A stretch of 64,000 bases of DNA from positions 325,332-389,331 of IMG/VR virus record IMGVR_UViG_3300021057_000274, one strand, 5' to 3'. A program made the translations under genes and the position numbers. The notes beneath the pieces were generated by a model. That model was not told where the DNA came from. It was given only the letters and a program-made list of their open reading frames with translations, and searched no databases. Each line of letters begins with the position of its first letter. Within the stretch, counting starts at the first letter, position 1. Below, one piece after another: positions 13,294-50,939 of the stretch.

Positions 13294-14340
13294 ATGCCTA
13301 CTCATGACTTCGGCGACGGCCGCGGCGCCGTACCAGCTACCCAACACTCCAACGGTGGGGGCTGGGTAGAAGACACCGCTGTAGTCGCTTCAACCGTCTA
13401 CGTTTCCGCCACTGCCGAGGTCTACGGGCAAGCGAAGGTCAGCGATAACGCCAAGCTCTACGACTCGTGCGAGGTCTTCAGCACGATCGTCACCGCGTGG
13501 GCAGGAACTACCGCGAAGAGCTTGAACGCGCTCGTGCGCCCGACGGTCAAGAACGAGTTCAACTATAAGTGCACGACAGCGGGCACTACGGGCACGAGCG
13601 AGCCGACCTGGCCGACCACGCTGGGTCAGACCGTCATCGACGGCACGGTTACCTGGACCGCGGTCACGATCGAGCGACCGATCGTGTCTGGAGATGCTCA
13701 AGTCTACGGCACCGCCAAGGTCTCTGGAACTGCGCTAGTCCGTGATCGGGCTCAAGTGTATGACACCGCCGACGTCACTGGCGCCGCGATCATCGAGGGC
13801 GACGGCCAGGTCTATGATGACGCGACCGTCAACTTATCGGCTAAGGTCTCAGGCTTCGCGACGGTGCACGGCACCGCGACGATCACCGACTCTGCGGTCA
13901 TCACCGAAAATGCGGAGGTCTTAGGAGCGACGCCCGTAAGCGGCTCAGCCAAGATCGCCGGGGACGCGACCGTTAACGCCGCTGAGGTCTCGGGCACGTC
14001 ACAGATCTCGGGGAGCGCAGAGGTGATCGGCGGGCTCGCGAGAGTGCAAGGCGCGGCTAAGATCTACGGGTCAGCTCGCGTCCAGGGCAGCACGGTCATT
14101 CTCGGCGCAGCTCAAGTCTCTGACAACGCCCTCGTCGAGGGCACCGCGACGGTGGGCGGGGCGGCCAAGGTGAGCGGCTCAGCTCTGATCTCAGGCGCTT
14201 GCAAGATCCTAGGAGCCGCAGTCATCAAGAACCAAGCCAAGATCCGCGACACTGTCACCGTTCAGGGTGCAGCGTCGGTGGGTGGAAACGTCGAGCTGAC
14301 CGGGTCACAGGTCGTCGAAGGGGTTACGGTGCTCACGTGA
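13294..14340 (+). CDS. hexapeptide-repeat beta-helix protein with an inserted small beta domain; probable virion fibre/decoration
   Basis: Many A-x-V-x-G-x hexads; insertion YKCTTAGTTGTSEPTWPTT..VIDGTVTW; late promoter. Confidence 0.7.
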   Translation: MPTHDFGDGRGAVPATQHSNGGGWVEDTAVVASTVYVSATAEVYGQAKVSDNAKLYDSCEVFSTIVTAWAGTTAKSLNALVRPTVKNEFNYKCTTAGTTGTSEPTWPTTLGQTVIDGTVTWTAVTIERPIVSGDAQVYGTAKVSGTALVRDRAQVYDTADVTGAAIIEGDGQVYDDATVNLSAKVSGFATVHGTATITDSAVITENAEVLGATPVSGSAKIAGDATVNAAEVSGTSQISGSAEVIGGLARVQGAAKIYGSARVQGSTVILGAAQVSDNALVEGTATVGGAAKVSGSALISGACKILGAAVIKNQAKIRDTVTVQGAASVGGNVELTGSQVVEGVTVLT

Positions 14341-14678
14341 AGCTAAGCGAGATCACAGAGTCGGTCACCGACATCGAGCAGATCGTGCCTGACGCGAAGG
14401 ATCTAGAGCGTGCAGAGGGCTTAAGCATGCGCGGCCCCACGTTTCACGGCAACAACGCGCCCTTTCAGTCCGAAGCGGTCAAGATGTCTAAGCTCATCAA
14501 GGACAAGACCAAGCTGATCCGGCGTGCGAAGGCGGTTGCCGCGACCTGGGGAACTAAGCCGATCAGGAACGGAAAGGGAGAGTCTCAGGATGTCTGGGGA
14601 CCCTTCGCGTACGCGCTCGAGAAGGCAGGGCTGACCGCCCAAGAGATCGACGCGATCTCGAAATACAAGGCTAAATAA
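14337..14678 (+). CDS. late protein with capsid-targeting-like N-terminus
   Basis: GTG start, MKLSEITES. Confidence 0.6.
   Translation: MKLSEITESVTDIEQIVPDAKDLERAEGLSMRGPTFHGNNAPFQSEAVKMSKLIKDKTKLIRRAKAVAATWGTKPIRNGKGESQDVWGPFAYALEKAGLTAQEIDAISKYKAK
14672..14677 (+). promoter_or_regulatory. T4-late-like promoter
   Basis: TAAATA 5 nt before ATG 14683. Confidence 0.6.
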
Positions 14679-14682
14679 GCGA

Positions 14683-14919
14683 ATGGACTTTAAGAGATAC
14701 CTGGCCGAGAGCCAGAACCAGATGGCGGACAAGGTCGGTGAGATGGCCGCCGAGCTTCGGCGAGCTGAGCTCGCGATAGAAGCTAGGAGACACGATCTCG
14801 ACAAAGCTACTCGTGACGAATATTACAACGGAGATGTGAGAAAGTTACAGCGTCTCTACAATGGGGCGATTGCTGCTCTCCTCAAGCTCAGCGAGCATCT
14901 TCGTAGGAAGCCGTCTTGA
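14683..14919 (+). CDS. late protein with capsid-targeting-like N-terminus
   Basis: MDFKRYLAES. Confidence 0.65.
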   Translation: MDFKRYLAESQNQMADKVGEMAAELRRAELAIEARRHDLDKATRDEYYNGDVRKLQRLYNGAIAALLKLSEHLRRKPS

Positions 14920-15476
14920 AGCTAACCGATCTCAGCACCGAGCTCCTCATCTTCGAGGTGCGCCAGCGCACCGCCGAGATGTTAGGAGAGTCGATCTCTG
15001 ACTACCTGTCGATGACGATCGCCAAGATCAAGGCCAAGAAGCCAGAGGAGCTCTATGACGGCGAGGAGCCGCTGGTTGACCTTGATCGCTTGACCTCCGT
15101 CGTCTCCGCAATGCGCGTGCTCGGTAACGCCGACTTCAGGAAGGCGATCTCGAAGGAGGACATCGGCATCAACCCGAACAACGTCAAGGAGTTCGCCAAG
15201 TTCCTCGACAGCATCCCCCGTGACGGCAAGAAGCTTCCACAACTGACCGCGGCGGTGATCACCGCCCTGAAGGGGATCGCACCGAACGTCTTCAAGAAGC
15301 AACGCGAGCAGCTTGACCGCCTCAAGTCTCAGGACGAGACTGAGCGCAAGGACGCGCTCCAGGACCTCTCTAAGTTCGCGACGCAGGTCAACCAGATCTT
15401 CAGCAAGGTACGGTCTGGCACGTCTGGCAAGAAAGATGTCTCCAAAGAGCTCGATCGAGCGGCAAAATCCGCCTGA
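14916..15476 (+). CDS. helical late protein
   Basis: MKLTDLSTELLIFE; coupled TTG start. Confidence 0.65.
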   Translation: MKLTDLSTELLIFEVRQRTAEMLGESISDYLSMTIAKIKAKKPEELYDGEEPLVDLDRLTSVVSAMRVLGNADFRKAISKEDIGINPNNVKEFAKFLDSIPRDGKKLPQLTAAVITALKGIAPNVFKKQREQLDRLKSQDETERKDALQDLSKFATQVNQIFSKVRSGTSGKKDVSKELDRAAKSA

Positions 15477-15502
15477 AGATCGTCACTAGACGGTCATCTT
15501 AG

Positions 15503-15531
15503 TTTACTTTAGGTACCTGCTGGTATAAAAT
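15503..15531 (+). promoter_or_regulatory. sigma70-like early promoter
   Basis: TTTACT-N17-TAAAAT. Confidence 0.7.
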
Positions 15532-15569
15532 CTCCTCTCGTGTAGGTTAACCGCACAAGAGGGTGGGCA

Positions 15570-17407: not shown

Positions 17408-17750
17408 TCACACTCCGAAGCTCACGGGCGACGCCGCGCAAGTGGCCGTCGCGAAAGCTCTCGAGGACTTGAAGTCGAACCTAAAGAAGTACAGCGACAT
17501 CGTCAGCGAGATCGACGCCCTCAACTCGGCTAACAACTTCCGGTACCTCTCGAAGAGTCGTCGAAACGAGCTGATGGCCGGCTTGATCGAGCGATCGGCG
17601 GACCTGTCTGACGCGTCGAAGGGCGCCTTCAGGGTGCTCAAGAAGGTCAAGCGCGAGCGCGCGCCAGAGAAGCTGATCGACACGGTTCTGGCGAGGATCG
17701 TCGTGCAAACCGAGCCGCTAGGCGGAGATGTCGAGATCACCGCGCCGTGA
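17391..17750 (+). CDS. hypothetical protein
   Basis: Helical ORF coupled to next gene. Confidence 0.6.
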   Translation: MARKVNHTPKLTGDAAQVAVAKALEDLKSNLKKYSDIVSEIDALNSANNFRYLSKSRRNELMAGLIERSADLSDASKGAFRVLKKVKRERAPEKLIDTVLARIVVQTEPLGGDVEITAP

Positions 17751-18169
17751 AGCTCGACGATCTGCGCTTCAAGCCCGGAACCTATCTCGCCTTCTTGCTG
17801 AGCGAGAAGAGCCGGGCTGACCTCCTCACTCGGTGGCCACCGCTCTATCCTGACGTGCGCTGTCACCACGTCACGCTCGAGTTCAACCTAACCGATGAGA
17901 AGCTCGCCTTCTTCATGAGAGCTCTCAAGGGCGGCGCTGACGTGCAGGTGGTCGGGTACGCGAAGAGCGACAAGCTCGACCTCTTCGCGGTCACCCTCAA
18001 CGGGCAAGCTGTTCGCCCCGACGGCGGCTATTACCACATCACCCACTCCCTCGTTCCGCCCACCAAGCCGAAGGAGTCCAATGACCTCTTGACGCGACTC
18101 AAGGGAGAGACGGACAAGTTCCGCGGAACTTGGAAGCTGGACGGAGAGGTCATTCTCCTCAAAAAGTAA
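17747..18169 (+). CDS. 2H phosphoesterase
   Basis: Two HxT motifs: HHVTL and YHITHS. Confidence 0.7.
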   Translation: MKLDDLRFKPGTYLAFLLSEKSRADLLTRWPPLYPDVRCHHVTLEFNLTDEKLAFFMRALKGGADVQVVGYAKSDKLDLFAVTLNGQAVRPDGGYYHITHSLVPPTKPKESNDLLTRLKGETDKFRGTWKLDGEVILLKK

Positions 18170-29839: not shown

Positions 29840-30231
29840 ACGATGAAGCTCTCTCCTCTGAGGTCACTGATCTAGAGGACAGTGACCTCAGAGAATTTGA
29901 GATGCTTCTAGGCTCGAACATCCAACCGTCGCACGTCGACGTCGGCGGCGAGCATCCGGTGCAACTCGGTGAGATCGTTTGCGGCGCGCAAAAACAGAGC
30001 GGGCTCTCTGTCAAGCAGTGGAACGCGCTCCCCTCGGATGAGCGAGAGGCCTACATTCAAGATGAGATCTTCAGGCGAGTCCTCAAGAATTTTCACGATG
30101 CTCTGCAGCTAGATCCGGCACCTCGTGAGGTGTCCCCAGATCTTCTCAAGTTGATCACGATCGAGACCCGCCAAGCTTCACCTCCAGATCTTCACGGAGA
30201 AGCTCTCGAGAAGCTCAAGGCCCAGACGTGA
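29836..30231 (+). CDS. hypothetical protein
   Basis: GTGA overlap with prkA stop. Confidence 0.55.
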   Translation: MNDEALSSEVTDLEDSDLREFEMLLGSNIQPSHVDVGGEHPVQLGEIVCGAQKQSGLSVKQWNALPSDEREAYIQDEIFRRVLKNFHDALQLDPAPREVSPDLLKLITIETRQASPPDLHGEALEKLKAQT

Positions 30232-30235
30232 CGAT

Positions 30236-30264
30236 TTTACTTGAGCTCAGTTTCCTGATAAAAT
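30236..30264 (+). promoter_or_regulatory. sigma70-like early promoter
   Basis: TTTACT-N17-TAAAAT; ATG 6 nt downstream; TTGAGCT/AGCTCAA flanks. Confidence 0.75.
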
Positions 30265-30270
30265 AGCTCA

Positions 30271-31649: not shown

Positions 31650-31651
31650 AC

Positions 31652-37703: not shown

Positions 37704-37708
37704 AGTTG

Positions 37709-37737
37709 TTTACTTTGAGGCGTTCCTAAGTTATAAT
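37709..37737 (+). promoter_or_regulatory. sigma70-like early promoter
   Basis: TTTACT-N17-TATAAT. Confidence 0.85.
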
Positions 37738-37762
37738 CGCACCATCAAATGGAGGCTACCAC

Positions 37763-38914
37763 TTGACCGACTTTCACTTCGTGACCCACACCACCGGTGT
37801 GGCGATGGTCCGCAACGGACGGCACGCTGTCGTGATGAACGACCAGCCGAACTTTTCGTACGTCATGGACGTTCTCCGTAGTCTGAAGGGACTACGCGGC
37901 GAGGCCCTCGAAGCCAAGCTCAAGGACCTGGACAAGGTCATGACGGTCGGCGGATTGGTCGAGAGCTTCGGCCAGCCGAAGGACCACAAGCTCAAGGACT
38001 GCCGGGTCTTCGTGGAGAAGGGCAAGCTCTTTTACTCGGAGTACCGCGGCCACAAGCAGGAGCTGCACGGCGCCCTCGCGGAGAGGATCCTCCAAGACCT
38101 CGGGAAGCCGTCCAAGGCGTTCGCGCGGTACGGCGACGCCCTGATGCGGTTCATGCAGAACATCCGCAAGAACAAGGTCAAGGACATCCGCAACGAGCTG
38201 TACGAGTGGCTGATGTCCGGCAAGGCGCCGATCACGTATGACGGTTGCTTCCTGGCGTACAAGAAGGTGCGGAGCAACTTCATGGACGGCCACACCGGGA
38301 CGATCGACAACTCGCCCGGCAACGTCGTCAGGATGCAGCAGTCGGAGGTCGACACGAACCGAGAGAACCACTGCTCGGTCGGCTTGCACTTTTGCTCGAA
38401 GGGGTACCTGGATCACTTCGGCGCCGGCGGCGCCAGCAAGATCGTGATCGTCAAGGTGAACCCGCGGCACGTGTTCGCGATCCCGACGGACTACAAGTTC
38501 CAGAAGGGTCGGGCCAGCGAGTACTTCGTGGTCGGGGAGTACACCGGCGCGCGAAACACCGATGACGGCCCGGTCGCGGAGGCATTTAAGGACGCCTTCA
38601 TCGACGAGGACACGAAGCAAGACGCGATGCCGGACGTCAAGCTGGTCGGGTGGCTCCGGCCAAGCTTGGAGAACCTGGCCAAGAGCTACGGGCTCCTGAC
38701 CGATGACGGCAAGGTGCTGATCCTCGAACGTCGCGGTAGGATGGTGCCGGTGAAGCAGGCGGCAAACGGCAAGTTCGAGGACATCGTCGGAATGCATCAA
38801 GCAACCGACGACGGCTTGGATGCGCCAAAGTCGATGTCGCTCCAGACCAAGTCGGTCCGGCAAGCGGTGCGAGCCGCGATCAACAAGGTGGAGAAGGGGC
38901 TCACCACGCGTTAG
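37763..38914 (+). CDS. rIIB: rIIB-like protein
   Basis: PITYDGCFLAYKKV...DGHTG.IDNSPG..V.M....VD......CSVGLHFCS..Y...VKVNP..V..IP.DY...KGR. Confidence 0.82.
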   Translation: MTDFHFVTHTTGVAMVRNGRHAVVMNDQPNFSYVMDVLRSLKGLRGEALEAKLKDLDKVMTVGGLVESFGQPKDHKLKDCRVFVEKGKLFYSEYRGHKQELHGALAERILQDLGKPSKAFARYGDALMRFMQNIRKNKVKDIRNELYEWLMSGKAPITYDGCFLAYKKVRSNFMDGHTGTIDNSPGNVVRMQQSEVDTNRENHCSVGLHFCSKGYLDHFGAGGASKIVIVKVNPRHVFAIPTDYKFQKGRASEYFVVGEYTGARNTDDGPVAEAFKDAFIDEDTKQDAMPDVKLVGWLRPSLENLAKSYGLLTDDGKVLILERRGRMVPVKQAANGKFEDIVGMHQATDDGLDAPKSMSLQTKSVRQAVRAAINKVEKGLTTR

Positions 38915-40539: not shown

Positions 40540-40560
40540 CATGGAGCTAAATACTCCATG
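40540..40560 (+). promoter_or_regulatory. T4-late-like promoter in the loop of a start-codon-sequestering hairpin
   Basis: CATGGAG-CTAAATA-CTCCATG; ATG 40558 in 3' arm. Confidence 0.7.
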
Positions 40561-41610
40561 CTTCTCAGTGAACTCTTAGACTCCGAGGCCGAGTGGAAAT
40601 GGCTCAAGCAGAACAACGACGTCTGGAAAGCCGCATTTAAGGTTGATGGACGAGAGTTCGAGCTAGCGATCCACGCTTGGCCAGACATCTTTTCAGATCC
40701 TAAAAACGAGAATAACCGGTGGGACTTTGAGTTTGTTGACCGAACAGATGACGTCGGAAAAGCCTTCGGTAACACAGGAAAGATGGATCGTAGCGCGATC
40801 ACCGTCTTCGCGACGGTGATGAAGATCGTGCGAGAGTTCATCGAGGAGAAGCGTCCAAACCGGATCTCGTTCACGGGGAATAAGGCAAAGAAGCGCGACA
40901 AGCTCTATCTCACTCTGATCAGAGCGATCGGTAATGACATCAAAAAGCTCGGATACAAGATCGAGCATCGCCCAGATGATCTTGAGAAGAACGGCTTTAT
41001 GGCCGCTGACGTTTTCACTCTTGTTCGCGAAGGTCATCTTGATGAGGGAGTCAAGGAGCTCATCACGGCGTTGATCATCGGAGCAGCAGCGATCGGTGGA
41101 GTCGACAACGTTGAGGCCGCCAAGAAGAAGCCAGTCGCGGCGAAGACCAAGATCGTCAAGCTGATCCCTGACCAGAAGCGGCTTCAGAAGCTCTCCGCGG
41201 CCGCCGCTCAAAAGTACCAGAAGGCTGATCCTAAGATGATCGTCAAGATCGTCAAGCTCGCCAAGAAGCATGAGGATCCGGTCTTCCCGAGAGCCGAGGA
41301 CATCCTCGCGACGATCGGGGTCGAGAGCAGCTTCAACCCGAAGGCCAAGTCAAACCTTCCAAAAGACCCCGCGATCGGTCTCATGCAGGTGCGTCCAGAG
41401 ATCTGGGGGATCTCACCGTCTGAGCTGAGTGACGTTGAGAGCCAGATCAAGCACGGAGTCGTCATTCTCAAGAAAAAGTACAATCGCTTCAAGGGTGATA
41501 AGATCAAGACCATCCACGCTTACAATGTGGGGATCACCGGCGTGCTTCAGGGGCGTCGAAACGAGAACTACGTTCAAAAGTGGAATCGAGAGCGGGAGCT
41601 TTACACGTGA
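40558..41610 (+). CDS. two-domain late protein: N-terminal domain paralogous to 42087 plus SLT lytic transglycosylase
   Basis: GVESSFNPKA, AIGLMQV, AYNVG SLT motifs. Confidence 0.8.
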   Translation: MLLSELLDSEAEWKWLKQNNDVWKAAFKVDGREFELAIHAWPDIFSDPKNENNRWDFEFVDRTDDVGKAFGNTGKMDRSAITVFATVMKIVREFIEEKRPNRISFTGNKAKKRDKLYLTLIRAIGNDIKKLGYKIEHRPDDLEKNGFMAADVFTLVREGHLDEGVKELITALIIGAAAIGGVDNVEAAKKKPVAAKTKIVKLIPDQKRLQKLSAAAAQKYQKADPKMIVKIVKLAKKHEDPVFPRAEDILATIGVESSFNPKAKSNLPKDPAIGLMQVRPEIWGISPSELSDVESQIKHGVVILKKKYNRFKGDKIKTIHAYNVGITGVLQGRRNENYVQKWNRERELYT

Positions 41611-42086
41611 AGTTGACGGAGTTTTGCCAGGAGATCGGTGAAGAGGTAGTTGAGGTCGTCGAGGCGGTTGAGGACATCGTCGGTGACATCTGTGAGGAGC
41701 AGCTCGACGAGAAGAGCATCATGCAGGTGATCGCCGCGCTGCTGATCGGCACGGCGTCATTCACGATCAGGGCGGAGGAACAAGAGAAGGCCGAGGCCGT
41801 CATCCAGCAGCTTAACCTCTCGAAGGCTGACCTCGAGTGGATCCGTGAGATGAACAAGAAGGCCAACGAGAAGATCCTCCCGACCAATGACTCGGCCGAG
41901 GAGCTTGCTCGTAAGATAAAGGAGCTCTACAAGATCGGCGGGTTCTCCTTCAAGAGCCGAGGGCTTAGCATGCCCCTGGTGAAGGACAAGGACGAGGAGG
42001 TCAGCGTGCGCATCGGCAAGAATCCCGTGCAAGGACTTCCTAACGCTGGCAAGGGCATCGGCATCAACTACAAGAAGACGTTTTAG
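41607..42086 (+). CDS. late protein, acidic N-terminus
   Basis: GTG MKLTEFCQE; internal QLDEKSIMQVIAALLIG similar to HLDEGVKELITALIIG of upstream gene. Confidence 0.65.
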   Translation: MKLTEFCQEIGEEVVEVVEAVEDIVGDICEEQLDEKSIMQVIAALLIGTASFTIRAEEQEKAEAVIQQLNLSKADLEWIREMNKKANEKILPTNDSAEELARKIKELYKIGGFSFKSRGLSMPLVKDKDEEVSVRIGKNPVQGLPNAGKGIGINYKKTF

Positions 42087-42560
42087 ATGCATCTGCATGA
42101 GCTACTCGACTCTAAGGTGCCCTGGCGCTGGACCCACAAGGGGCACGTCTTGCGCGGTGCCGAGTTTGAGATCGGCGGCAAAAAGTTCATCGTAGATCTA
42201 GTTCGTGTCGTGGGGCTTAACACCGATCGCTGGAAGGTCTCCTTTGCACAGATCATCAAGATGATGACTGGCAAAGATGAGCCGTTCTACTTAAACATGC
42301 ACAACATGAAGAGAGAAGCGATACAAGTTTTCGCGACGGTCATCAAGGTCATCGAGGACTTCATTCATGAGGTGAAACCAGATGAGATTAGCTTCGTCGG
42401 TTATAAGCATGACAAGAGGGACAAGCTCTACTCCCTCTTTCTAGAGAAGTTCAAGCCCAAGCTCCAGCAAGCTGGATACAAGGTCTCCTCCAACGCTCCA
42501 GAGAACTGGGATGACGAAGTCACTTTTTCTATAGTGAAGGACAAGGATCCAGCTAAATAG
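42087..42560 (+). CDS. late protein paralogous to N-domain of 40558
   Basis: AIQVFATVIKV..FI.E.KP..ISF.G.K..KRDKLY shared. Confidence 0.75.
   Translation: MHLHELLDSKVPWRWTHKGHVLRGAEFEIGGKKFIVDLVRVVGLNTDRWKVSFAQIIKMMTGKDEPFYLNMHNMKREAIQVFATVIKVIEDFIHEVKPDEISFVGYKHDKRDKLYSLFLEKFKPKLQQAGYKVSSNAPENWDDEVTFSIVKDKDPAK
42554..42559 (+). promoter_or_regulatory. T4-late-like promoter
   Basis: TAAATA 5 nt before ATG 42565. Confidence 0.6.
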
Positions 42561-42564: not shown

Positions 42565-43155
42565 ATGCCGGACCTACTTACCGCTGACATCCTCTTGAAG
42601 GTGATGCCGAACGTCAAGACGCGGATCGACTCCAAGAACCCGAAGTCGAAGACGCGCCTCGAGGTTTTTCTTGAGCCGCTCAACATCACGCTTGAGGCCT
42701 TCGAGATCAACACTCCGCGGCGCGCCGCGATGTTCCTCGCCCAGGTCGCCCACGAGTCGGGAGAGTTTCGCTACCTGGCCGAGCTCGCCGACGGCGTCGC
42801 GTACGACACCGGAAAGCTGGCTGAGAACCTAGGCAACACTCCTGGAGCGGACGGTGACGGTCAAAAGTATCGTGGGCGCGGCTTGATCCAGATCACCGGC
42901 GCGGCGAACTACAAGGAGTGCTCGATCGCGCTCTTCAGAGATCCTGACTTTCTCCTCACGAACCCCGAGGTGCTCGAGAAGCCCCTCCACGCGTGCCGCT
43001 CGGCGGGTTGGTTCTGGAAGTGGAAGAAGCTCAACGCTTGCGCTGACGCCGATGACTTTCTCAAGTGCACGAAGATCATCAACGGCGGGACGAACGGTCT
43101 TGACGATCGTAAGATGTACTGGGAGCGCGCCAAGCGGGAGCTGAAGGTCACTTAA
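42565..43155 (+). CDS. GH19 chitinase-like endolysin
   Basis: FLAQVAHESG, DGQKYRGRGLIQITG..NY, SAGWFW, INGGTNGL.DR. Confidence 0.9.
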   Translation: MPDLLTADILLKVMPNVKTRIDSKNPKSKTRLEVFLEPLNITLEAFEINTPRRAAMFLAQVAHESGEFRYLAELADGVAYDTGKLAENLGNTPGADGDGQKYRGRGLIQITGAANYKECSIALFRDPDFLLTNPEVLEKPLHACRSAGWFWKWKKLNACADADDFLKCTKIINGGTNGLDDRKMYWERAKRELKVT

Positions 43156-43391
43156 TGGACTTCAAAGCCTTCGTCATCCAAGAAGCAAGGGATCCGCTCG
43201 TCATCACCGACTTCGGCGTAGCCACCGACGTGGAGCACCAGGGCAAAGTGATCACCACGATCCCCCGTTACGGCGTGTGGACCGTGGCCAGCAACGAGCT
43301 TCAGCGAGTGATCGACACCGGTGACGACCTCGAGGCTCTCAAGGTGAAGCACGGGATCACGTCTGATCCTATCAAGCTAGGAAAGAGGTGA
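43155..43391 (+). CDS. small late protein with capsid-targeting-like N-terminus
   Basis: MDFKAFVIQEA. Confidence 0.65.
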   Translation: MDFKAFVIQEARDPLVITDFGVATDVEHQGKVITTIPRYGVWTVASNELQRVIDTGDDLEALKVKHGITSDPIKLGKR

Positions 43392-43393
43392 CC

Positions 43394-43660
43394 ATGGACT
43401 TACTTCGAGAGCTGATCAATCTCCGCGAGGTAGAGGAGAAGAAGCCAGATAAGCCCGCCGAGAAGCTTAGAGCTCGCCCTGACGCGGTCAACTTCAAGGA
43501 GCTCGAGGGTGAGACGATCACGAATGTCAAGTATGGTTCGCCCCACTATCCTCGTGCTGGAAGTTATGGCGCCGTCACGATCACCACGAAGTCGGGGAAG
43601 GAGTTCGTGCTCACCCAGGGCTTCGGTGAGGTTAACCTTTCGAAACTCATTCCGCTATGA
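43394..43660 (+). CDS. small late protein
   Basis: MDLLRELINLRE. Confidence 0.6.
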   Translation: MDLLRELINLREVEEKKPDKPAEKLRARPDAVNFKELEGETITNVKYGSPHYPRAGSYGAVTITTKSGKEFVLTQGFGEVNLSKLIPL

Positions 43661-43851
43661 TCTTCAAGAGCTTTCTAGCAGAGACGTTCGGCGAGACCGT
43701 CCTGAAGCAGATCCCGCAGCAAAAGCAGCGGCAAGACGCGCTGAACGACCAGCTCAAGGATCTCTACGGCGTCGCGAATCGTCTCGGGATGTATGACGCG
43801 GCCGACTACTTGAGGACGATCTTGGTCAAGGCCGGGGAGATGGCGCGATGA
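43657..43851 (+). CDS. small late protein with capsid-targeting-like N-terminus
   Basis: MIFKSFLAET. Confidence 0.65.
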   Translation: MIFKSFLAETFGETVLKQIPQQKQRQDALNDQLKDLYGVANRLGMYDAADYLRTILVKAGEMAR

Positions 43852-44147
43852 AGCTCTTGCAAGAGTTGCTCGAGATTCTCTCAGAGGCGATCGTCGAGCC
43901 AGAGCTCACCCGTAAGGCTGAGCTTCACCACGGCACGCAAGACTACTTCATCGGCGTAGACGCGTTCAAGAACGCCCTCGAGAAGAGCGACCTGCCCGAG
44001 GATGTCAAGGCTGACGTGATCGACGAGATCTACAAGCATGACTTGCGTCAGCTGAACTACACGATCATCTATCAGCTCTGTCAAGACGCCGGGCATGAGG
44101 AGCATCTCGGCAAGATCATCAAGTTAGCAGGCTTTCGCAAGCACTAA
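43848..44147 (+). CDS. small late protein
   Basis: MKLLQELLEILSEA. Confidence 0.65.
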   Translation: MKLLQELLEILSEAIVEPELTRKAELHHGTQDYFIGVDAFKNALEKSDLPEDVKADVIDEIYKHDLRQLNYTIIYQLCQDAGHEEHLGKIIKLAGFRKH

Positions 44148-44917: not shown

Positions 44918-45268
44918 ATGAACCTCAAGCCCTGCCCCTTCTGCGAGTCAGTCGCCGAATTTGTTCCGGCCGATAGCGTCGACGGAGCTATGATCGGTTG
45001 CTCAAATCGGAAGTGTCCCGCGTTTCTGCTTCTCCTCGTTGAGCCCGGTGACACGGTCGAGCGCAACGTTGAGCTCTGGAACAATCGGACAGAGAAGAAG
45101 CTGAAGGCCGCTGAGAAGATCTGTCGTGACGCCGCTGAGCGACTAGGGAAGGCGGCCTCGGAAGAATGGGCGAGCCATGACGTTGAGGCGGCTAACATCA
45201 GGCAAGCTCAGAGCAGTCTCGCGTCACAGCTCGCTGATGGAATTCGAGCCCTCATTCGCGATGGCTAA
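44918..45268 (+). CDS. Lar-like (restriction alleviation) Zn-ribbon protein
   Basis: LKPCPFC...C....C...WNNR. Confidence 0.65.
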   Translation: MNLKPCPFCESVAEFVPADSVDGAMIGCSNRKCPAFLLLLVEPGDTVERNVELWNNRTEKKLKAAEKICRDAAERLGKAASEEWASHDVEAANIRQAQSSLASQLADGIRALIRDG

Positions 45269-45514: not shown

Positions 45515-46060
45515 ATGACTTGGCGTAAGCCGCTGAAGCTTAGGCTCGTTGAGACGAGCGACGGCGAGTCTTTCAAGATCTTCTCAAAGGACACGACTGG
45601 CGTTCCGGTCGGGAGTCATCCAGGAGCGTTCGGAGTCGTCCGAAAGCACCACGTCCACGAGGGCGTCGACCTCTACGCGCCAGTGGGCACGCCTGTTTAC
45701 GCGGTAGAGTCAGGTGCGGTCGTCAGAGTGCTGCCGATGACCGGTCCAGCCGCAGGGTCACCGTGGTGGTTCGACACGAAGGCGGTGATGGTCGAGGGGC
45801 GGTCTGGAGTCGTCGTCTACGGAGAGATCTCTCCTGCGGTACAAGAAGGGCGAGTGATCTTCGCAGGTGACGTCGTCGGACACGTCATCCGTGTCCTTCG
45901 CCATGACAAGGGGCGCCCGACCAGCATGCTTCACCTCGAGCTCCATCGCATGGGCTCGCGCAGCTGTCTGGACTGGAATCTGCCCCCGGCGAAGCCGCCC
46001 GAGCAGCTGCTCGATCCTACGCCGCACCTGTTGCAGATCTGCCGCAGGCATCGTAAATAG
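45515..46060 (+). CDS. M23 family peptidase
   Basis: HEGVDLYAPVGTPVYAV..G.V; MLHLELH. Confidence 0.85.
   Translation: MTWRKPLKLRLVETSDGESFKIFSKDTTGVPVGSHPGAFGVVRKHHVHEGVDLYAPVGTPVYAVESGAVVRVLPMTGPAAGSPWWFDTKAVMVEGRSGVVVYGEISPAVQEGRVIFAGDVVGHVIRVLRHDKGRPTSMLHLELHRMGSRSCLDWNLPPAKPPEQLLDPTPHLLQICRRHRK
46054..46059 (+). promoter_or_regulatory. T4-late-like promoter
   Basis: TAAATA upstream of 46082. Confidence 0.55.
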
Positions 46061-46081: not shown

Positions 46082-46417
46082 GTGGAATTCAAGAACTTTC
46101 TGAGAGAGGCTAAGATCGACCACGACGAGCTGATCAAGAAGGGCGTCGAGGCCTTTAGAGCCGTCGCGAAGTACCTCACAAAAAAGTTCCCCAAATCAGA
46201 AGACGGATGGACCGACGAGGCCTTCTTCGACCCGAAGACCGAGTGCTGGTACACTTACGAGTACGTCAGCATGAAGTCTGGAGATGAGGTTTTCCTCTAC
46301 CTCAAGACCGACCCTAGCGGAAAGGTTGAAGAGGTTAACGAGTTCACAGACGCTCAAGTTAAGTCTTGGGTGACCGATGATGATCTGATCGCAGAGATCA
46401 CCGAGCAACTGCCGTGA
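46082..46417 (+). CDS. late protein with capsid-targeting-like N-terminus
   Basis: MEFKNFLREA. Confidence 0.7.
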   Translation: MEFKNFLREAKIDHDELIKKGVEAFRAVAKYLTKKFPKSEDGWTDEAFFDPKTECWYTYEYVSMKSGDEVFLYLKTDPSGKVEEVNEFTDAQVKSWVTDDDLIAEITEQLP

Positions 46418-46839
46418 ACTTCAAGAACTTTCTCGCGGAGGCTGCGGCCGACGCTTACTACCACGCGACCCTCACCAAGAACGCTGACCAGATCAAGGAG
46501 AAGGGTCTCACCAAGTTCAACGCCTCGAACTGGGTCAAGGCCGCGAGCAAGGAGCGCTACGGCGACGGCGCGATCTTCGCCTTCGAGAACGAGCTCGACG
46601 CGCTTCGCTGGGCAGGCAAGATGGACTGGGAGTTCAACAAGGGTTTCGGCACCGGAAAGGTCTCGATCGTCAAGCTTCGCGTTTCAGATCCTGAGGCTTG
46701 GAAGGTGGATGACGCTGACCCGCTAGGTCAAGCAGGATCCAAGGGGCGCTGGATGAAGAGCCAGGACGCGGTCAAGGCGACCGACATCATCTCGATCACT
46801 CCCGTCAACGCAGCCGATATCAAGCGCGCGACCAAATGA
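46414..46839 (+). CDS. ADP-ribosyltransferase-fold-like late protein
   Basis: MNFKNFLAEA; YYHAT....I.EKGL...IFAF...A..W...IVKL pattern. Confidence 0.55.
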   Translation: MNFKNFLAEAAADAYYHATLTKNADQIKEKGLTKFNASNWVKAASKERYGDGAIFAFENELDALRWAGKMDWEFNKGFGTGKVSIVKLRVSDPEAWKVDDADPLGQAGSKGRWMKSQDAVKATDIISITPVNAADIKRATK

Positions 46840-47195
46840 GAATTGATGAGATCGTAGGCGAGCTCCCGGTCGGTGCTCGAGTAAAGGGTACCATCCTCGA
46901 GACGTCCGAGGAGGGCGACAAGGAGTACTTTGGCACGGTGATCGATCCCAAGCTAGCCGATAGCGGCGAAGTTGACGTGGAGGGCGATCATGGAGAGGTA
47001 GGTCTCTTCATCAAGCCAGATCATGATGACATCGTCATGGCTTTCACGCGAGAAGGTGATCACTGGAGGCATGACGCCTACGGCGGTTACTACGAGGTGA
47101 CGAAGTTCCAGGTCGTCAAGACCGAGCAGTCGAAGAGGGGTCGTTGCCCGCACGGGGTGGCTGCTGGTAACCGCTGCGAGAAGTGCGACGGATAG
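46836..47195 (+). CDS. late protein
   Basis: MRIDEIVGE; C-terminal CPHG...C..C. Confidence 0.6.
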   Translation: MRIDEIVGELPVGARVKGTILETSEEGDKEYFGTVIDPKLADSGEVDVEGDHGEVGLFIKPDHDDIVMAFTREGDHWRHDAYGGYYEVTKFQVVKTEQSKRGRCPHGVAAGNRCEKCDG

Positions 47196-47234
47196 GCTCA
47201 GGCTGGTGGTAGTCCATCCGGATACACAAAGTTG

Positions 47235-47263: not shown

Positions 47264-47271
47264 ATCATACC

Positions 47272-47409: not shown

Positions 47410-47445
47410 GCAACGCGCTCTTTTACAATTCGGAAGCAGTACCTT

Positions 47446-47532
47446 GCCAGACTGGCGGAATCGGCAGACGCGCTAGTCTCAAAAATTAGTACCCGTGAGG
47501 GTGTCCCGGTTCGAGCCCGGGGTCTGGCACCA
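47446..47532 (+). tRNA. tRNA-Leu(CAA)
   Basis: GCCAGAC/GTCTGGC acceptor, CT-CAA-AA loop, long V arm, TTCGAG, CCA. Confidence 0.92.
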
Positions 47533-47533
47533 A

Positions 47534-47621
47534 GGATGGTTGGCAGAGTGGCCAATTGCACCTGGCTGTAAACCAGGCGCCCTGACGGGCTTCGGTGGTT
47601 CAAATCCATCACCATCCACCA
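47534..47621 (+). tRNA. tRNA-Tyr(GTA)
   Basis: CCTGG-CTGTAAA-CCAGG, long V arm, TTCAAAT, CCA. Confidence 0.93.
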
Positions 47622-47626
47622 ACATT

Positions 47627-47718
47627 GGGTCTGGTCATAAGGACGGGTGGTCCTGTCAGGAGCCTGTAAAGCTCTTCCTCAGCGAGGCACGGAGTTCGAT
47701 TCTACCCCAGACCCACCA
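47627..47718 (+). tRNA. atypical tRNA-Tyr(GTA), 8-bp acceptor
   Basis: GGGTCTGG/CCAGACCC, GGAGC-CTGTAAA-GCTCT, enlarged D arm, short bulged T stem, CCA. Confidence 0.7.
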
Positions 47719-47722
47719 AATT

Positions 47723-47812
47723 GGAGAGTGAACCGCACGGGGTGTGGCACTGCCTGGAAAGCAGTCGGGCTGGCGTAAGCTGGTCGCGGGTCGGGACCGC
47801 CGCTCTCCTCCA
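47723..47812 (+). tRNA. tRNA-Ser(GGA), 8/4 fold
   Basis: GGAGAGTG/CGCTCTCC, 6-bp D stem, ACTGC-CTGGAAA-GCAGT, GCGG/CCGC T stem, CCA. Confidence 0.85.
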
Positions 47813-47830
47813 AGTTGTAGAAGTAACGCT

Positions 47831-47919
47831 GCCCTCGTGGACAAATTGGTAAAGTTGCCAGGCTCAGAACCTGGAGCCGCGAAAGCGTATTGTCGGTTCG
47901 ACTCCGACCGAGGGCACCA
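47831..47919 (+). tRNA. tRNA-Leu(CAG)
   Basis: CCAGG-CTCAGAA-CCTGG, long V arm, TTCGACT, CCA. Confidence 0.92.
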
Positions 47920-47927
47920 ACACGAGA

Positions 47928-48010
47928 CCCCTCGTGGCAAATGGAAATTGGTACACCTACTAGATCGAGAGTCTAGGCTTTTCTCGGTTCGAATCCGAGC
48001 GAGGGGACCA
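47928..48010 (+). tRNA. atypical tRNA-Leu(GAG): short V arm, C33
   Basis: CCCCTCG/CGAGGGG, CTAGA-TCGAGAG-TCTAG, TTCGAAT, CCA. Confidence 0.65.
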
Positions 48011-48014
48011 GCAT

Positions 48015-48107
48015 GGAAGACGAACCGAGAAGGTCTCGGACTCGCCTTGAAAGCGATGGGATCGCGGCCAACCCGTGATTGGGGATCATCTCCTCCGTCT
48101 TCCGCCA
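48015..48107 (+). tRNA. tRNA-Ser(TGA), 8/4 fold
   Basis: GGAAGACG/CGTCTTCC, CCGAGA-AGG-TCTCGG D arm, CT-TGA-AA loop, T loop ATCATCT, GCCA. Confidence 0.82.
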
Positions 48108-48111
48108 GTAT

Positions 48112-48195
48112 GCGAGCGTGGTGGAATGGTATACACACGTGCCTTAGGAGCACGTGCCGCAAGGTATGTGGGTTCGACTCCCACCGCTCGCACCA
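48112..48195 (+). tRNA. tRNA-Leu(TAG)
   Basis: CGTGC-CTTAGGA-GCACG, TTCGACT, CCA. Confidence 0.93.
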
Positions 48196-48206
48196 AAGGA
48201 GACGAC

Positions 48207-48404
48207 ATGAACCTCAAGTCTAGAGAAGCAGGTGAGCTGATCCAGGGCATCCAGGTAAACGAGTCTCGCAGGGTGAAGTACTCGTCCTGGTACCACGCGA
48301 TCGCTCGAAACAGAGGAATCACGATCAGGACGAGGAGGGTGAGCGATGACGAGATCATCGTCACCCGGATCGAACCCAAGGATGACGAACTAGTCAGGGA
48401 CTAG
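48207..48404 (+). CDS. small protein inside tRNA cluster
   Basis: AAAGGAG SD; 65 aa; 3' end overlaps tRNA-Ser(CGA). Confidence 0.6.
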   Translation: MNLKSREAGELIQGIQVNESRRVKYSSWYHAIARNRGITIRTRRVSDDEIIVTRIEPKDDELVRD

Positions 48405-48467
48405 CGCTGCCTCGAAAGCAGATGGACTCGGAAACGGGCTGGGGGTCGGGACCTCCGTCATCCGCCA
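48380..48467 (+). tRNA. tRNA-Ser(CGA), 8/4 fold
   Basis: GGATGACG/CGTCATCC, CTAGTC-AGG-GACTAG, CT-CGA-AA loop, GCCA. Confidence 0.85.
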
Positions 48468-48573
48468 AGGAAGCAAGCAGGCGCTGGCAACGGCGTTTGG
48501 AGACTCATGACCTTTTTGACGTAGCTTTTGCATGCTGCATCAGACGAGCGACCTCTACTTAGGAGCCTTTATC

Positions 48574-48847
48574 ATGAACGACACCGAGCTGCTGAACGCG
48601 ATCAACAAGTACAGGTTGCATCCGCTCCCCTCAAGCTTTCTGGGTGGGGAGTACTGGAGGTGTCTTTGGACACCCTCGAGTTCCAGCACCAGCTGAGGGA
48701 TTTCCGAACAAAACGAGAAGCGTCGAGGTAGTCGGGTTCGGACGAACGGTCAGAGCAGCCGTTCGTGACTGTGTCGAGAAGATGAGAGCGACGATCGCCG
48801 ACGGAGGTAGGATGGCGATGTTCGACGGCACTGACGATGGAGAGTGA
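48574..48847 (+). pseudogene. split small gene (+1 frameshift at CCC-T 48673-76); pseudogene or programmed frameshift
   Basis: AGGAG SD; MNDTELLNAINKY... stops at 48696; the +1 frame continues ...GRTVRAAVRDCVEKM to 48847. Confidence 0.45.
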
Positions 48848-48934
48848 ACCGGGGAGGCCCTGGGACCGCCTGCTAAGCGGATCGTCTGGGAGCGCGAGCT
48901 CTTGGATGCGGATCGAGACCGCCGCTCTCCGCCA
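48839..48934 (+). tRNA. tRNA-Ser(GCT), 8/4 fold
   Basis: GGAGAGTG/CGCTCTCC, CCGGGG-AGG-CCCTGG, CT-GCT-AA loop, GCGG-ATCGAGA-CCGC, GCCA. Confidence 0.85.
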
Positions 48935-49046
48935 GAGCAAGGTGAAATTTCGCGGCGAGAACCAAAGAGCGTGACCGGCTGCTACCGGGCTACGCATCGA
49001 ATCGCGGTAACGAGGATCCTAGCAGGGAATTCCCTCACCTTGCTCT
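48934..49046 (+). ncRNA. unidentified structured RNA
   Basis: 12-bp terminal stem AGAGCAAGGTGA/TCACCTTGCTCT filling the gap between two tRNAs. Confidence 0.5.
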
Positions 49047-49051
49047 ACCTT

Positions 49052-49138
49052 GCCTGCGTGGCGGAACTGGTATACGCGCAACGTTGAGAGCGTTGTTCCC
49101 TAACGGGATTGAGGGTTCGAGTCCCTCCGTAGGCACCA
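49052..49138 (+). tRNA. tRNA-Leu(GAG)
   Basis: CAACG-TTGAGAG-CGTTG, long V arm, TTCGAGT, CCA. Confidence 0.93.
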
Positions 49139-49145
49139 AGACGGA

Positions 49146-49241
49146 TGAGTGGGGGAATGGGCAATCCCTGGGTTAATCCCTGTGCGAGTCATGTCGCGCT
49201 GCCTGCCAGTAGGTGGAATTGTAGGTTCGAGTCCTATCTCA
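49146..49241 (+). ncRNA. degenerate or multi-arm tRNA-like element
   Basis: Canonical T arm GTAGG-TTCGAGT-CCTAT, D-like arm, three internal hairpins, weak acceptor, no CCA. Confidence 0.4.
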
Positions 49242-49269
49242 GAAAGTACTGGCCGCATCGTCTTATCTC

Positions 49270-49343
49270 GGGTCGTTGGTGTAGTGGCAGCACAGGAGCC
49301 TCCAAAACTCTTAGTCAGGGTTCGATTCCTTGACGACCCGCCA
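49270..49343 (+). tRNA. tRNA-Trp(CCA)
   Basis: GGGTCGT/ACGACCC, CT-CCA-AA loop, TTCGATT, GCCA. Confidence 0.88.
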
Positions 49344-49405
49344 GCTGTGTCCAGTGCTAAAATACATCGGTACCGCAACGGGCGAAGGGTACCGAGCAGT
49401 TCAGT

Positions 49406-49480
49406 AGGGGATTGGTGTAGTGGTAACTACGCGGAGCTCCAAACTCCGAGTCGGGGGTTCGATTCCCTCATCCCTTGCCA
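49406..49480 (+). tRNA. tRNA-Trp(CCA), second copy
   Basis: AGGGGAT/ATCCCTT, CGGAG-CTCCAAA-CTCCG, GCCA. Confidence 0.9.
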
Positions 49481-49481
49481 A

Positions 49482-49599: not shown

Positions 49600-49605
49600 G
49601 GTTCT

Positions 49606-49684
49606 GGGTCGGCAGCTCTTGGCAACTGCGTGGGACCCTTCCCAAGGGAAACGCGACGAGGGTTCGATTCCCTTCCGATCCACC
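49606..49684 (+). tRNA. atypical tRNA-Gly(CCC)
   Basis: GGGTCGG/CCGATCC acceptor, CCC-TTCCCAA-GGG anticodon arm on an extended GCGT/ACGC stem, GAGGG-TTCGATT-CCCTT. Confidence 0.55.
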
Positions 49685-49903
49685 GGGGCAGAAGGCCGAA
49701 GGAAGGCCACTTGTAAAACACGGACGAGCTCCAGTAAAATGGGCGTCTCCATCAAGAACGTCGTCGAGTACGGTTAACAGATTGCACCGGGCGAAGCTCC
49801 TGCCAAGGGGTTAGCAGGGAAGCAGGTTTCCAACGGCGGCGTTGCCTGAAGTAATGACTCAGGTCGGAGGCGTTTGCGGGTTCGACTCCCGCCTGCCCTA
49901 CCA
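49685..49903 (+). ncRNA. 219-nt tRNA-like RNA (acceptor + T arm + CCA with a large structured insert)
   Basis: GGGGCAG/CTGCCCT-ACCA; GCGGG-TTCGACT-CCCGC; 49741-50 pairs with 49866-75; 49757-66 pairs with 49834-43. Confidence 0.6.
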
Positions 49904-49924
49904 GAGGTACTGCTTTCGAATCAC

Positions 49925-50007
49925 GCCGGCGTGGCTAGGACAAATTGGGACAGTCACTGGGCTTAAACCCCAGGCTCGTGAGGGTTCGAATCCCTCCGTC
50001 GGCACCA
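49925..50007 (+). tRNA. atypical tRNA-Leu(TAA): short V arm
   Basis: GCCGGCG/CGTCGGC, CTGGG-CTTAAAC-CCCAG, TTCGAAT, ACCA. Confidence 0.8.
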
Positions 50008-50014
50008 CAAAAGT

Positions 50015-50020
50015 TAAATA
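50015..50020 (+). promoter_or_regulatory. T4-late-like promoter
   Basis: TAAATA 4 nt before GTG 50025. Confidence 0.6.
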
Positions 50021-50024
50021 GGCG

Positions 50025-50939
50025 GTGAGCTCCTTCCGCCAATTTCTTCTTGAAGCCAAGTCCGTCAAGGACTATCGGCACGAGGATCGCTTCGACGACC
50101 TCGCCTACTGGCCCCGCAGAGAAGATCCTCAATTCATGGCGCCCTCCGAGGGATTTCATTTTACCTATCACAAGGGTGATCTCATCCTCCACAGCACCGA
50201 CAATGCGGTCTATTCGAGCGTCGTCGCGACCGGTCAGATCGAGGCTAAGCGGGCCGGCAAGATCAAGGACTACAAGATGGACTCCAGCCTCTGGAATCAC
50301 TTCGGCGGCAAGGTCGACCTCAAGAACAAGGTCATCACCGTGAGCAAGGAGTCTGTTGGTGACAAGATGCGCCAGCGCTCGATCAACGACGTCAAGGACA
50401 TCCAGGCCGCGTTCAAGAACCTCCGCAAGTATGGCGTCACGGACGACTTCAAGCTCAAGGGTGTCCCGTCTCCATACAATGGAATGAAGATGGGCGACTT
50501 CCTCAAGCACCCCGACCCCGTTCAAACGATGATGGGAGGCGGCGGCCAAATCATGTATCACGGAACCTCGAAGAAGCGCTGGAACGAGAAGATCTCTCGA
50601 GAGGGTCTGCGTCCAGGAAACACGGGCGAGATCTACGTCGATCTTGTCAAGGGCTATTCTGAGGAGAACGTTTACCTCGCAACGACCGCCAAGGTCGCCG
50701 AGTTCTACGGCAAGCGTCAGGCCGAGAAGGATAACGATGATGGTTACGTCATCCTCAAGGTAGAGGTACCTGACTCCGCCAAGCTCCGCCCCGACGATCA
50801 CTTCGCGGTCTTTCTAACGAAGAACAAGGACAAGGAGCACGAGATGCAGAAGAGATCGGTTCAGGAGCTCGGCTCGCTAGCTTATAGAGGTAGGATCCCG
50901 GCGAGGTTCATCAAGATGCTCAGCGCCCGGAGAGCTTAG
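50025..50939 (+). CDS. late protein with capsid-targeting-like N-terminus and C-terminal ART/Tpt1-like domain
   Basis: MSSFRQFLLEA; MYHGTS....I..EGLRP...VYLATT...A..Y...VILKV...YRGRIP. Confidence 0.65.
   Translation: MSSFRQFLLEAKSVKDYRHEDRFDDLAYWPRREDPQFMAPSEGFHFTYHKGDLILHSTDNAVYSSVVATGQIEAKRAGKIKDYKMDSSLWNHFGGKVDLKNKVITVSKESVGDKMRQRSINDVKDIQAAFKNLRKYGVTDDFKLKGVPSPYNGMKMGDFLKHPDPVQTMMGGGGQIMYHGTSKKRWNEKISREGLRPGNTGEIYVDLVKGYSEENVYLATTAKVAEFYGKRQAEKDNDDGYVILKVEVPDSAKLRPDDHFAVFLTKNKDKEHEMQKRSVQELGSLAYRGRIPARFIKMLSARRA

Follow-up and report, generated by a model that had tools for sequence, protein, structure and literature searches.

Leader genes and TAAATA-headed units at the locus

We analysed a stretch of 64,000 nucleotides (nt), hereafter the window, which is the terminal 64 kb of the 389,331-bp virus record IMGVR_UViG_3300021057_000274 of IMG/VR (58% GC). 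The subject of this study is a group of genes in it whose products share a leader, a short N-terminal peptide resembling the capsid-targeting sequence (CTS) of the phage T4 internal proteins, on bodies that are mostly unrelated to each other. The source genome is a T4-superfamily jumbo phage. Its capsid protein is closest, among named phages, to those of Ralstonia phage RsoM2USA (55% identity) and Xanthomonas phage XacN1 (52%), followed by Xoo-sp13 and Stenotrophomonas jumbo phages, and Rak2/GAP32-like phages are more distant. Megablast of a 4.3-kb stretch against GenBank phages gave no match. The 389-kb record is labelled 'provirus' in IMG/VR; its appearance is that of a near-complete (98%) lytic-type T4-superfamily jumbo phage, and no evidence of flanking host DNA was seen in the window.

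A sequence-only reading of the window had picked out 14 such N-termini, all of which translate as it listed them. It had also placed the genes in units behind TAAATA boxes, and all 14 indeed lie inside six such units (boxes at window positions 13283, 14672, 40548, 42554, 46054 and 50015), each box heading a co-oriented run of genes that overlap or lie at most 5 nt apart. The start codons of the 14 genes are seven ATG, six GTG (including 14337, 41607, 46082, 46414 and 50025; genes are named by the window position of their start) and one TTG (14916), and most of the genes overlap the preceding stop by 1-4 nt. The estimate of about 14 carriers was right for the window and too low for the genome, where there are about 50. 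The span that had been given, 14337-50939, has leader genes at both ends and none between 15.5 and 40.5 kb. The features are as follows.

13283-13288, plus strand: TAAATA box resembling a late promoter, followed after 5 nt by the ATG of 13294 and heading the unit 13294-14678.
14337-14678, plus strand: 113-amino-acid (aa) basic protein with class-2 leader MKLSEITE (LSE-5, ITE-8); GTG start overlapping the upstream stop; no match in Pfam or PHROG.
14672-14677, plus strand: TAAATA box, followed after 5 nt by the ATG of 14683.
14683-14919, plus strand: 78-aa basic protein with class-1 leader MDFKRYLAE (LAE-9), from translation and motif search.
14916-15476, plus strand: 186-aa protein with leader MKLTDLSTELLIFE; M1, K2, L3, L6 and E14 invariant across four metagenomic orthologues.
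40548-40553, plus strand: TAAATA box, followed after 4 nt by the ATG of 40558.
40558-41610, plus strand: 350-aa protein with leader MLLSELLDSE, a DUF6934-like N-domain and a C-terminal SLT lytic transglycosylase domain (Pfam, PHROG).
41607-42086, plus strand: 159-aa very acidic protein (isoelectric point, pI, 4.9) with leader MKLTEFCQE and several more [LIV]-x-E sites; possibly a prohead-core-like component.
42087-42560, plus strand: 157-aa DUF6934-like paralogue of the 40558 N-domain with leader MHLHELLD (LHE-5), from Pfam, blastp and PHROG.
42554-42559, plus strand: TAAATA box, followed after 5 nt by the ATG of 42565 and heading the unit 42565-44147.
42565-43155, plus strand: GH19 chitinase-like protein without a leader (Pfam); blastp homologue of XacN1 ORF272.
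43155-43391, plus strand: 78-aa protein with class-1 leader MDFKAFVIQE (IQE-10), from translation and motif search.
43394-43660, plus strand: 88-aa protein with leader MDLLRELINLRE (LRE-6, LRE-12); the leader recurs at genome position 307744, on a 188-aa protein of unrelated sequence.
43657-43851, plus strand: 64-aa protein with class-1 leader MIFKSFLAE (LAE-9), from translation and motif search.
43848-44147, plus strand: 99-aa acidic protein with leader MKLLQELLE (LQE-6, LLE-9), from translation.
46054-46059, plus strand: TAAATA box, followed after 22 nt by the GTG of 46082; GGAG lies in between.
46082-46417, plus strand: 111-aa acidic protein with class-1 leader MEFKNFLRE (LRE-9), from translation and motif search.
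46414-46839, plus strand: 141-aa protein with class-1 leader MNFKNFLAE, modelled with a minimal domain of the ADP-ribosyltransferase (ART) superfamily (conserved YH[AV]T), from AlphaFold2 (AF2), Foldseek, ESM Atlas and an orthologue alignment.
46836-47195, plus strand: 119-aa acidic protein with leader MRIDEIVGE (IDE-5, VGE-9), from translation.
50015-50020, plus strand: TAAATA box, followed after 4 nt by the GTG of 50025.
50025-50939, plus strand: 304-aa two-domain protein with leader MSSFRQFLLE and a C-terminal domain modelled as an ART fold (invariant HGTS), from 40 homologues, AF2 and Foldseek.
17747-18169, plus strand: possible extra member of 140 aa, MKLDDLRFKPG; weak, with the first [LIVFM]-x-E at residue 20 and no TAAATA unit found.

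A non-random motif at about a tenth of N-termini

Leaders were counted with a single home-made gene caller applied to four whole genomes, which called 519 proteins in the phage under study, 445 in RsoM2USA, 469 in XacN1 and 257 in T4; the caller is simple, so its counts may be wrong by a few, and class-2 membership is fuzzy at the margins. A six-frame translation of all 389 kb contains the class-1 core F-[KRQ]-x-[FYW]-[LIVM]-x(1-2)-E at 14 places; at seven of them it follows the start codon of a real open reading frame (ORF) by 2-3 residues, and six of these seven are in the window. The strict class-2 motif M-[KR]-[LI]-x-[ED]-[LIF] begins 25 of the 519 proteins against 0.35 expected from its internal frequency (70-fold enrichment), and it was found after none of 1982 internal Met residues. 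Moreover, an N-terminus-anchored two-component mixture model assigned a leader to about 10% of the proteins, with the consensus M-K-L-[STKND]-E-L-L-x-E. Genome-wide, about 50 of the 519 called proteins carry a leader, namely the 14 in the window, possibly 17747, and others encoded in clusters at kb 75-79, 86-90, 251-267 (directly downstream of the head module), 298-300 and 307-313 of the genome. Under the same caller, strict class-2 starts number one of 257 in T4, one of 469 in XacN1 and 32 of 445 in RsoM2USA, which has about ten class-1 leaders in addition.

Such a motif could be a product of chance, composition or annotation, as MKL... starts are common and start codons may be wrongly called; spurious ORFs are frequent in high-GC genomes, GTG or TTG is the start codon of seven of the 14 genes, and the caller is crude. 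This explanation is nearly excluded by the 70-fold enrichment, by the near absence of the motif from T4 and XacN1 under the same caller, and by the occurrence of the same leaders in independently called metagenomic orthologues and in coding sequences of RsoM2USA as annotated in GenBank.

All-against-all blastp of the leader proteins gave only three small paralogue groups, in line with the earlier statement that the bodies are mostly unrelated, and the shared leader is thus not a result of whole-protein paralogy. Signal peptides were ruled out as well, the leaders being amphipathic and acidic rather than hydrophobic.

One leader family conserved as a peptide

No orthologues of the window leader proteins were found in RsoM2USA or XacN1, and genome-wide only 3 of about 50 leader proteins have one there; conservation was therefore tested on metagenomic homologues. 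On these alignments, the two classes that had been distinguished are variants of one leader, which interchange at one alignment position among orthologues while the Glu is conserved. The 50025 protein has 40 metagenomic homologues (40-57% identity) with either flavour at the equivalent position, including the class-2-type starts MLLEELLQE, MKINELLNE and MRLSELLLE and the class-1-type starts MITFKDFLTE and MISFKEYLTE; conservation of the Glu (E10) is 90% or more, and a few residues downstream the conserved body starts. The classes alternate similarly among orthologues of 46414. In the 14916 family, the invariant E14 lies within I-F-E. The structural-module paralogues ORF403-405 of RsoM2USA also mix the two, beginning MTFKAFLQE, MTTFKEYLTE and MKLEDLFE.

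Codons at the leader positions track the usage of each genome, differ between a 58%-GC and a 41%-GC genome and vary within a genome, and identical leader peptide types occur in relatives at 35% and 44% GC. Since synonymous codons are free to vary, selection acts on the peptide and not on the DNA. Recombination cassettes at the DNA level were ruled out because the codons are not conserved. In the AF2 model of 50025 (pLDDT 88.8) residues 1-8 are below pLDDT 50, as are residues 1-11 in that of 46414, so that the leader is predicted to lie outside the fold in both.

Linkage to late-type promoters

TAAATA is present at most 60 nt upstream of 51 called genes, including those of the protease, the portal region and many tail proteins. 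The spacing to the start codon falls into two classes, one of 4-8 nt, which is too short for a Shine-Dalgarno sequence, and one of 18-37 nt with GGAG in between. The short spacing is seen at window positions 13283, 14672, 40548, 42554 and 50015 and at about 16 further sites in the genome; it suggests leaderless or near-leaderless late mRNAs, because the gap leaves no room for a Shine-Dalgarno sequence. In RsoM2USA the TAAATA boxes lie 16-45 nt upstream of starts. Leader genes are strongly associated with such units: 36 of 50 (72%) are in TAAATA-headed units versus 85 of 469 other genes (18%; odds ratio 11.6, p 1e-14). In addition, one gene is homologous (43% identity) to the XacN1 gene that carries the annotation late transcription sigma factor. 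We infer that the leader genes are expressed late, and the earlier description of them as late genes holds at this level.

Many leader genes start 4-8 nt past a TAAATA box, which would put their first codons at the 5' extremity of the mRNA. The helix may then have a function outside the capsid, as a translation-initiation or mRNA feature of late, partly leaderless messages, as a tag for a phage chaperonin or for turnover under protease control, or as a signal for localisation elsewhere in the cell, and a mild excess of CTA codons at Leu-3 and the metabolic-looking nature of some carriers are compatible with this. We regard it as quite improbable. The leader is conserved at the amino-acid level across genomes of 35-58% GC with free synonymous variation, most leader genes are internal and translationally coupled rather than first in their unit, and leader-bearing proteins are found in the virions of the relative RsoM2USA. 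Moreover, the conserved Glu and the [LI]-x-E fit the specificity of the encoded protease and the site of the capsid protein itself.

Head-maturation machinery and comparison with known systems

A Peptidase_S77 (T4 gp21-type) prohead protease is encoded (PF03420, 101 bits). It has 36% identity to T4 gp21, keeps the aligned His-85 (GELNHP) and Ser-140 (GVSSRG), and has LIE at residue 9 of its own N-terminus, as has T4 gp21. The gp23-type major capsid protein has the site Y-L-T-E followed by T-A; [LI]-x-E plus T-A is conserved in three jumbo phages (Y-L-T-E here, I-A-E in RsoM2USA, L-A-E in XacN1), in parallel to L-T-E-65 of T4 gp23. Directly upstream of the capsid gene lies a candidate scaffold, a coiled-coil-like acidic ORF of 305 aa whose N-terminus is a helix resembling the leader. 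A complex prediction for the protease with the 78-aa protein 14683 scored 0.01, which gives no verdict and carries no weight either way.

The CTS of T4 IPI, IPII and IPIII was reportedly described by Mullaney and Black in 1996. The first 10 residues of IPIII are sufficient for capsid targeting, and the CTS is both targeting and cleaved. Targeting depends on residues 4 and 7 and processing on residues 8 and 10, and related T-even phages have further proteins whose leaders are CTS-like (PMC9026906, PMC5694885). Alt is cut at ITE-6, losing six residues (PMC5694885). The T4 N-termini that we read are MAKINELLRE for gp24, MELITE for Alt, MEGLIE for gp67, MLKEQLIAE for gp22 and MKTYQEFIAE for ipII and ipIII. 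In the control run on T4 (NC_000866), a 54-aa ORF at about 18966 on the minus strand also showed a CTS-like start of the class-1 pattern, MKTFKEFIKE, besides ipII and ipIII.

The leaders of the window are like those of IPI-III in that about 10 N-terminal residues are shared by otherwise unrelated, apparently late and dispensable-looking proteins, and in that a gp21-type protease is encoded in both phages. As in IPIII, there is an aromatic or hydrophobic residue at 4 and 7 and [L/I]-x-E at 8-10, and MSSFRQFLLE of 50025 and MKTFKQFLSE of RsoM2USA ORF89 align in register with MKTYQEFIAE; most class-1 leaders here are one residue shorter and match with a one-residue shift. M-x(1-2)-F-K-x-F-L-x-E fits the IPII/IPIII pattern, whereas class-2 leaders such as MKLSEITE and MKLLQELLE have [LI]-x-E within residues 3-5 or 3-6, in many cases with a second one within 7-10, and fit the pattern of gp24 and Alt instead. 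The T4-like leaders of the sequence-only reading are thus real and non-random, with the matching protease and capsid site encoded. On the other hand, there are about 50 carriers here (about 10% of the proteome) versus a handful in T4, they are spread over many late-type units versus one or two loci, many have enzyme domains, and a second and commoner flavour, MKLxEL..E, is used interchangeably; packaging and cleavage here are predicted from sequence.

ART-fold cargo would be a further likeness, to Alt, the ADP-ribosyltransferase that T4 packages and injects, although the ART-like proteins of the window, at 141 and 304 aa, are small and closer to Tpt1/KptA, DarT and DUF952; neither 46414 nor 50025 has sequence homology to Alt. 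Giant phages of the phiKZ type (SPN3US, phiKZ) package dozens of head proteins, and their gp21-related protease cuts after the Glu of a three-residue motif (PMC5694885, PMC10052503). The likeness lies in the many different head proteins and in gp21-related processing after Glu; the propeptides there are long (often more than 100 residues) with [S/A/G]-x-E, and here 5-14 residues with [L/I]-x-E, in the T4 style. Similarly, 40558 resembles T7 gp16-type proteins in joining a putative virion-targeting element to an SLT domain, and it matches PHROG 342, 'internal virion protein with endolysin domain', but it is much smaller (350 aa) and has a DUF6934-like N-domain and a predicted cleavable T4-type leader.

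Leader-bearing proteins in relatives

Ten virion bands of RsoM2USA were identified by mass spectrometry (PMC8504454), and leader-bearing proteins are among them: ORF89 (253 aa, MKTFKQFLSE) and ORF132 (674 aa, MKTFKQFLN..LME) are each one of the ten. Another of these bands, ORF257, has I-T-E at residue 15 and is encoded inside an operon of class-1 leader genes. A 461-aa RsoM2USA protein fits ORF438 by mass and position, a candidate assignment, and its homologue in the phage under study lies directly downstream of two leader genes.

At about 171-214 kb of RsoM2USA (MG752970.1) there are about 35 mostly tandem genes (products of about 190-210 aa) starting MKL(N/S/H/Q)EI, which look like a very large leader-bearing multigene family.

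Uncultured relatives show the same arrangement. In a metagenomic locus (8138-11698; ENA contig dsDNA_phage_37, 143.6 kb, 44% GC), seven consecutive leader genes follow one TAAATA box, with the leaders MKLSELLFE, MKLHEITLAE, MKLHEIKLFE, MKLSEIINE, MKVSELLQE, MKVNELLNE and MLLTELFDSK, a few kb from T4-type baseplate and portal genes.

Proposed cargo

The SLT domain of 40558 (residues 249-342) scores 52.3 bits against a Pfam cut-off of 21.3, which agrees with the transglycosylase proposed from the sequence, and the PHROG matches of this protein are transglycosylase families. DUF6934 scores 28.6 bits in Pfam, and the DUF6934-like N-domain is common to 42087. No related loci were found in IMG/VR with the 40558 SLT protein as query.

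Two ART-fold enzymes had also been proposed in the earlier reading, and 46414 and 50025 do model as ART-superfamily folds. A sequence search of both against PDB chains gave no match, and fold searches were therefore used. With Foldseek, the C-terminal half of 50025 hit pertussis S1, KptA and DarT, and 46414 hit Tpt1/KptA, DUF952 and DarT; for the two together the hits comprised Tpt1/KptA, pertussis and cholera A subunits, DarT and DUF952, with E about 1e-4 and modest TM scores of 0.28-0.54. An ESM Atlas search agreed with the ART fold, and PF01885 was found on one homologue of 50025. In the alignments, a His is invariant in HGTS (50025) and YH[AV]T (46414), with an invariant Tyr and Asp further on, and a catalytic role of these residues is putative. 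A third small ART-like leader carrier is present outside the window.

For the other ten window members, no family scored above threshold; some of these proteins are basic (pI above 9) and the rest acidic (pI below 5.5). Similarly, Pfam searches of 30 leader proteins outside the window were almost all blank. Leader proteins with cytidylyltransferase-like (NMNAT-like) and phosphoribosyltransferase domains are encoded at C1:217493-218269 (minus strand) and C1:244875-245708 (plus strand), and, if packaged, they could be pre-loaded nucleotide or NAD-salvage enzymes.

Not every enzyme gene of this region has a leader. The GH19 protein 42565, within one of the six units, has none, and neither do the Lar (44918) and M23 (45515) proteins, encoded between two units. 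The GH19 protein is a homologue (blastp 35% identity, E 2e-28) of the chitinase ORF272 found in XacN1 virions (PMC5852040), so that a second route into the particle probably exists besides the leader.

The composition of this cargo bears on another explanation, in which the leader proteins are transient prohead-core substrates of the protease, like T4 gp22, gp67 and gp68, that are degraded and expelled at maturation, most of them being neither retained nor injected nor effectors. Small and very acidic members rich in extra [LIV]-x-E sites, namely 41607 (pI 4.9), 43848, 46082 and 46836, would fit it, as would the similar N-termini of the T4 core proteins gp67 (MEGLIE) and gp22 (MLKEQLIAE) and the similar helix at the start of the candidate scaffold. 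However, many members are basic and have folded enzyme domains (SLT, ART) with the site solely at the N-terminus, and ORF89 and ORF132 of RsoM2USA were recovered from mature virions at band level. It is unlikely as an account of the whole set and probably fits a subset only. Under capsid targeting, too, some members may belong to the prohead core and not be effectors, for example 41607, which is very acidic.

Other genes of the window

The part of the window from 15.5 to 40.5 kb, which has zero leader genes, contains genes for an AAA ATPase, a helicase, PrkA/DUF444/SpoVR, rIIA/rIIB and an HNH endonuclease. At 27914-34972 the phage has the full PrkA / DUF444 (YeaH) / SpoVR triad, in bacteria a kinase module associated with stress or sporulation, and a cpYpsA-SLOG protein and an HD phosphohydrolase are encoded between its genes. 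Genes resembling rIIA and rIIB (35040-38914) and a homologue of the restriction-alleviation protein Lar (44918-45268) are found among the late-type units. A tRNA cluster at 47446-49480, between two late-type units, comprises four tRNA-Leu (CAA, CAG, TAG, GAG), one tRNA-Tyr and two tRNA-Trp.

Discussion

We read the leaders as T4-type capsid-targeting and processing propeptides used at a far larger scale than in T4, and we put the probability of this at roughly 0.65. In such a scheme, the leader genes would be transcribed late from TAAATA promoters along with the head and tail genes. The amphipathic leader of 5-14 residues would dock the new protein on the scaffolding core of the forming prohead, and the gp21-type prohead protease would cut it off after the Glu of [L/I]-x-E. 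The mature protein would be retained in the DNA-filled head and expelled into the host with the DNA, so as to be active before any phage gene is expressed. The 40558 transglycosylase would be an internal-virion wall-cutting enzyme, at least two ART-fold proteins would be the counterpart of T4 Alt, and the remaining cargo would consist of small proteins, many in number and either basic or acidic. The examples of IPI* and Alt make injection plausible, and likewise a role in anti-defence or takeover.

Several points weigh against this interpretation. Class-2 leaders are short amphipathic helices, and in several of them position 5 is occupied by Asp or by a non-acidic residue, or Glu is missing near 9-10 (14916, 42087, 17747). 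Two of the carriers outside the window resemble nucleotide-metabolism enzymes (CTP_transf_like, Pribosyltran), unexpected as capsid cargo, and about 50 loaded species would be far above the handful of T4. The candidate scaffold matches only PHROG 10922, of unknown function, so that its kinship to gp22 stays putative. XacN1 has an equivalent protease and capsid site yet almost no leaders, and its virion chitinase and lipase are without one; the leader is thus neither universal nor required for every virion enzyme. We therefore dropped XacN1 as positive support, and it serves as a negative control. The RsoM2USA masses are predicted ones and hence silent on cleavage (PMC8504454), and neither that paper nor the XacN1 paper (PMC5852040) contains N-terminal or cleavage data. 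The counts carry the small error of the caller, and in the phage under study the role of the leader is predicted from sequence.

A broader proposal is that a T4-related jumbo clade, comprising the genome studied here, RsoM2USA and several metagenomic contigs of 35-58% GC, made the CTS a general loading system by which more than 50 proteins, or about a tenth of the proteome, would enter the head. An injected first-wave arsenal could then be predicted from a tag of 5-10 residues; several ART-fold enzymes and a wall-cutting enzyme would belong to it, and possibly also NAD-salvage enzymes, loaded in advance as a counter to NAD-depleting defences. We offer this tentatively, as a proposal with the odds somewhat against it.

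The mechanism is already known from T4, and its long-propeptide versions from phiKZ-like phages. Judged against the searchable library, four points appear to be new: a tag that reaches about 10% of the proteome, the free interchange of its two flavours, its occurrence in the RsoM2USA-type jumbo clade with near absence from XacN1, and the prospect that a packaged proteome could be read from sequence. No prior description of such a leader repertoire in the XacN1/RsoM2USA group was found within the library that could be searched.

To our knowledge, the proteins that travel with phage DNA into the cell are known for very few phages, usually via proteomics. If the leader is a true capsid address, it would give a sequence-only list of about 50 candidate injected proteins for this phage, and comparable lists for the cultivable RsoM2USA and for uncultured relatives. 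Most carriers are of unassigned function, which makes them natural places to search for early host-takeover and counter-defence activities. It would also mean that the T4 CTS mechanism scales with capsid size, and the leader would be a minimal tag usable in the laboratory for loading foreign proteins into jumbo-phage heads.

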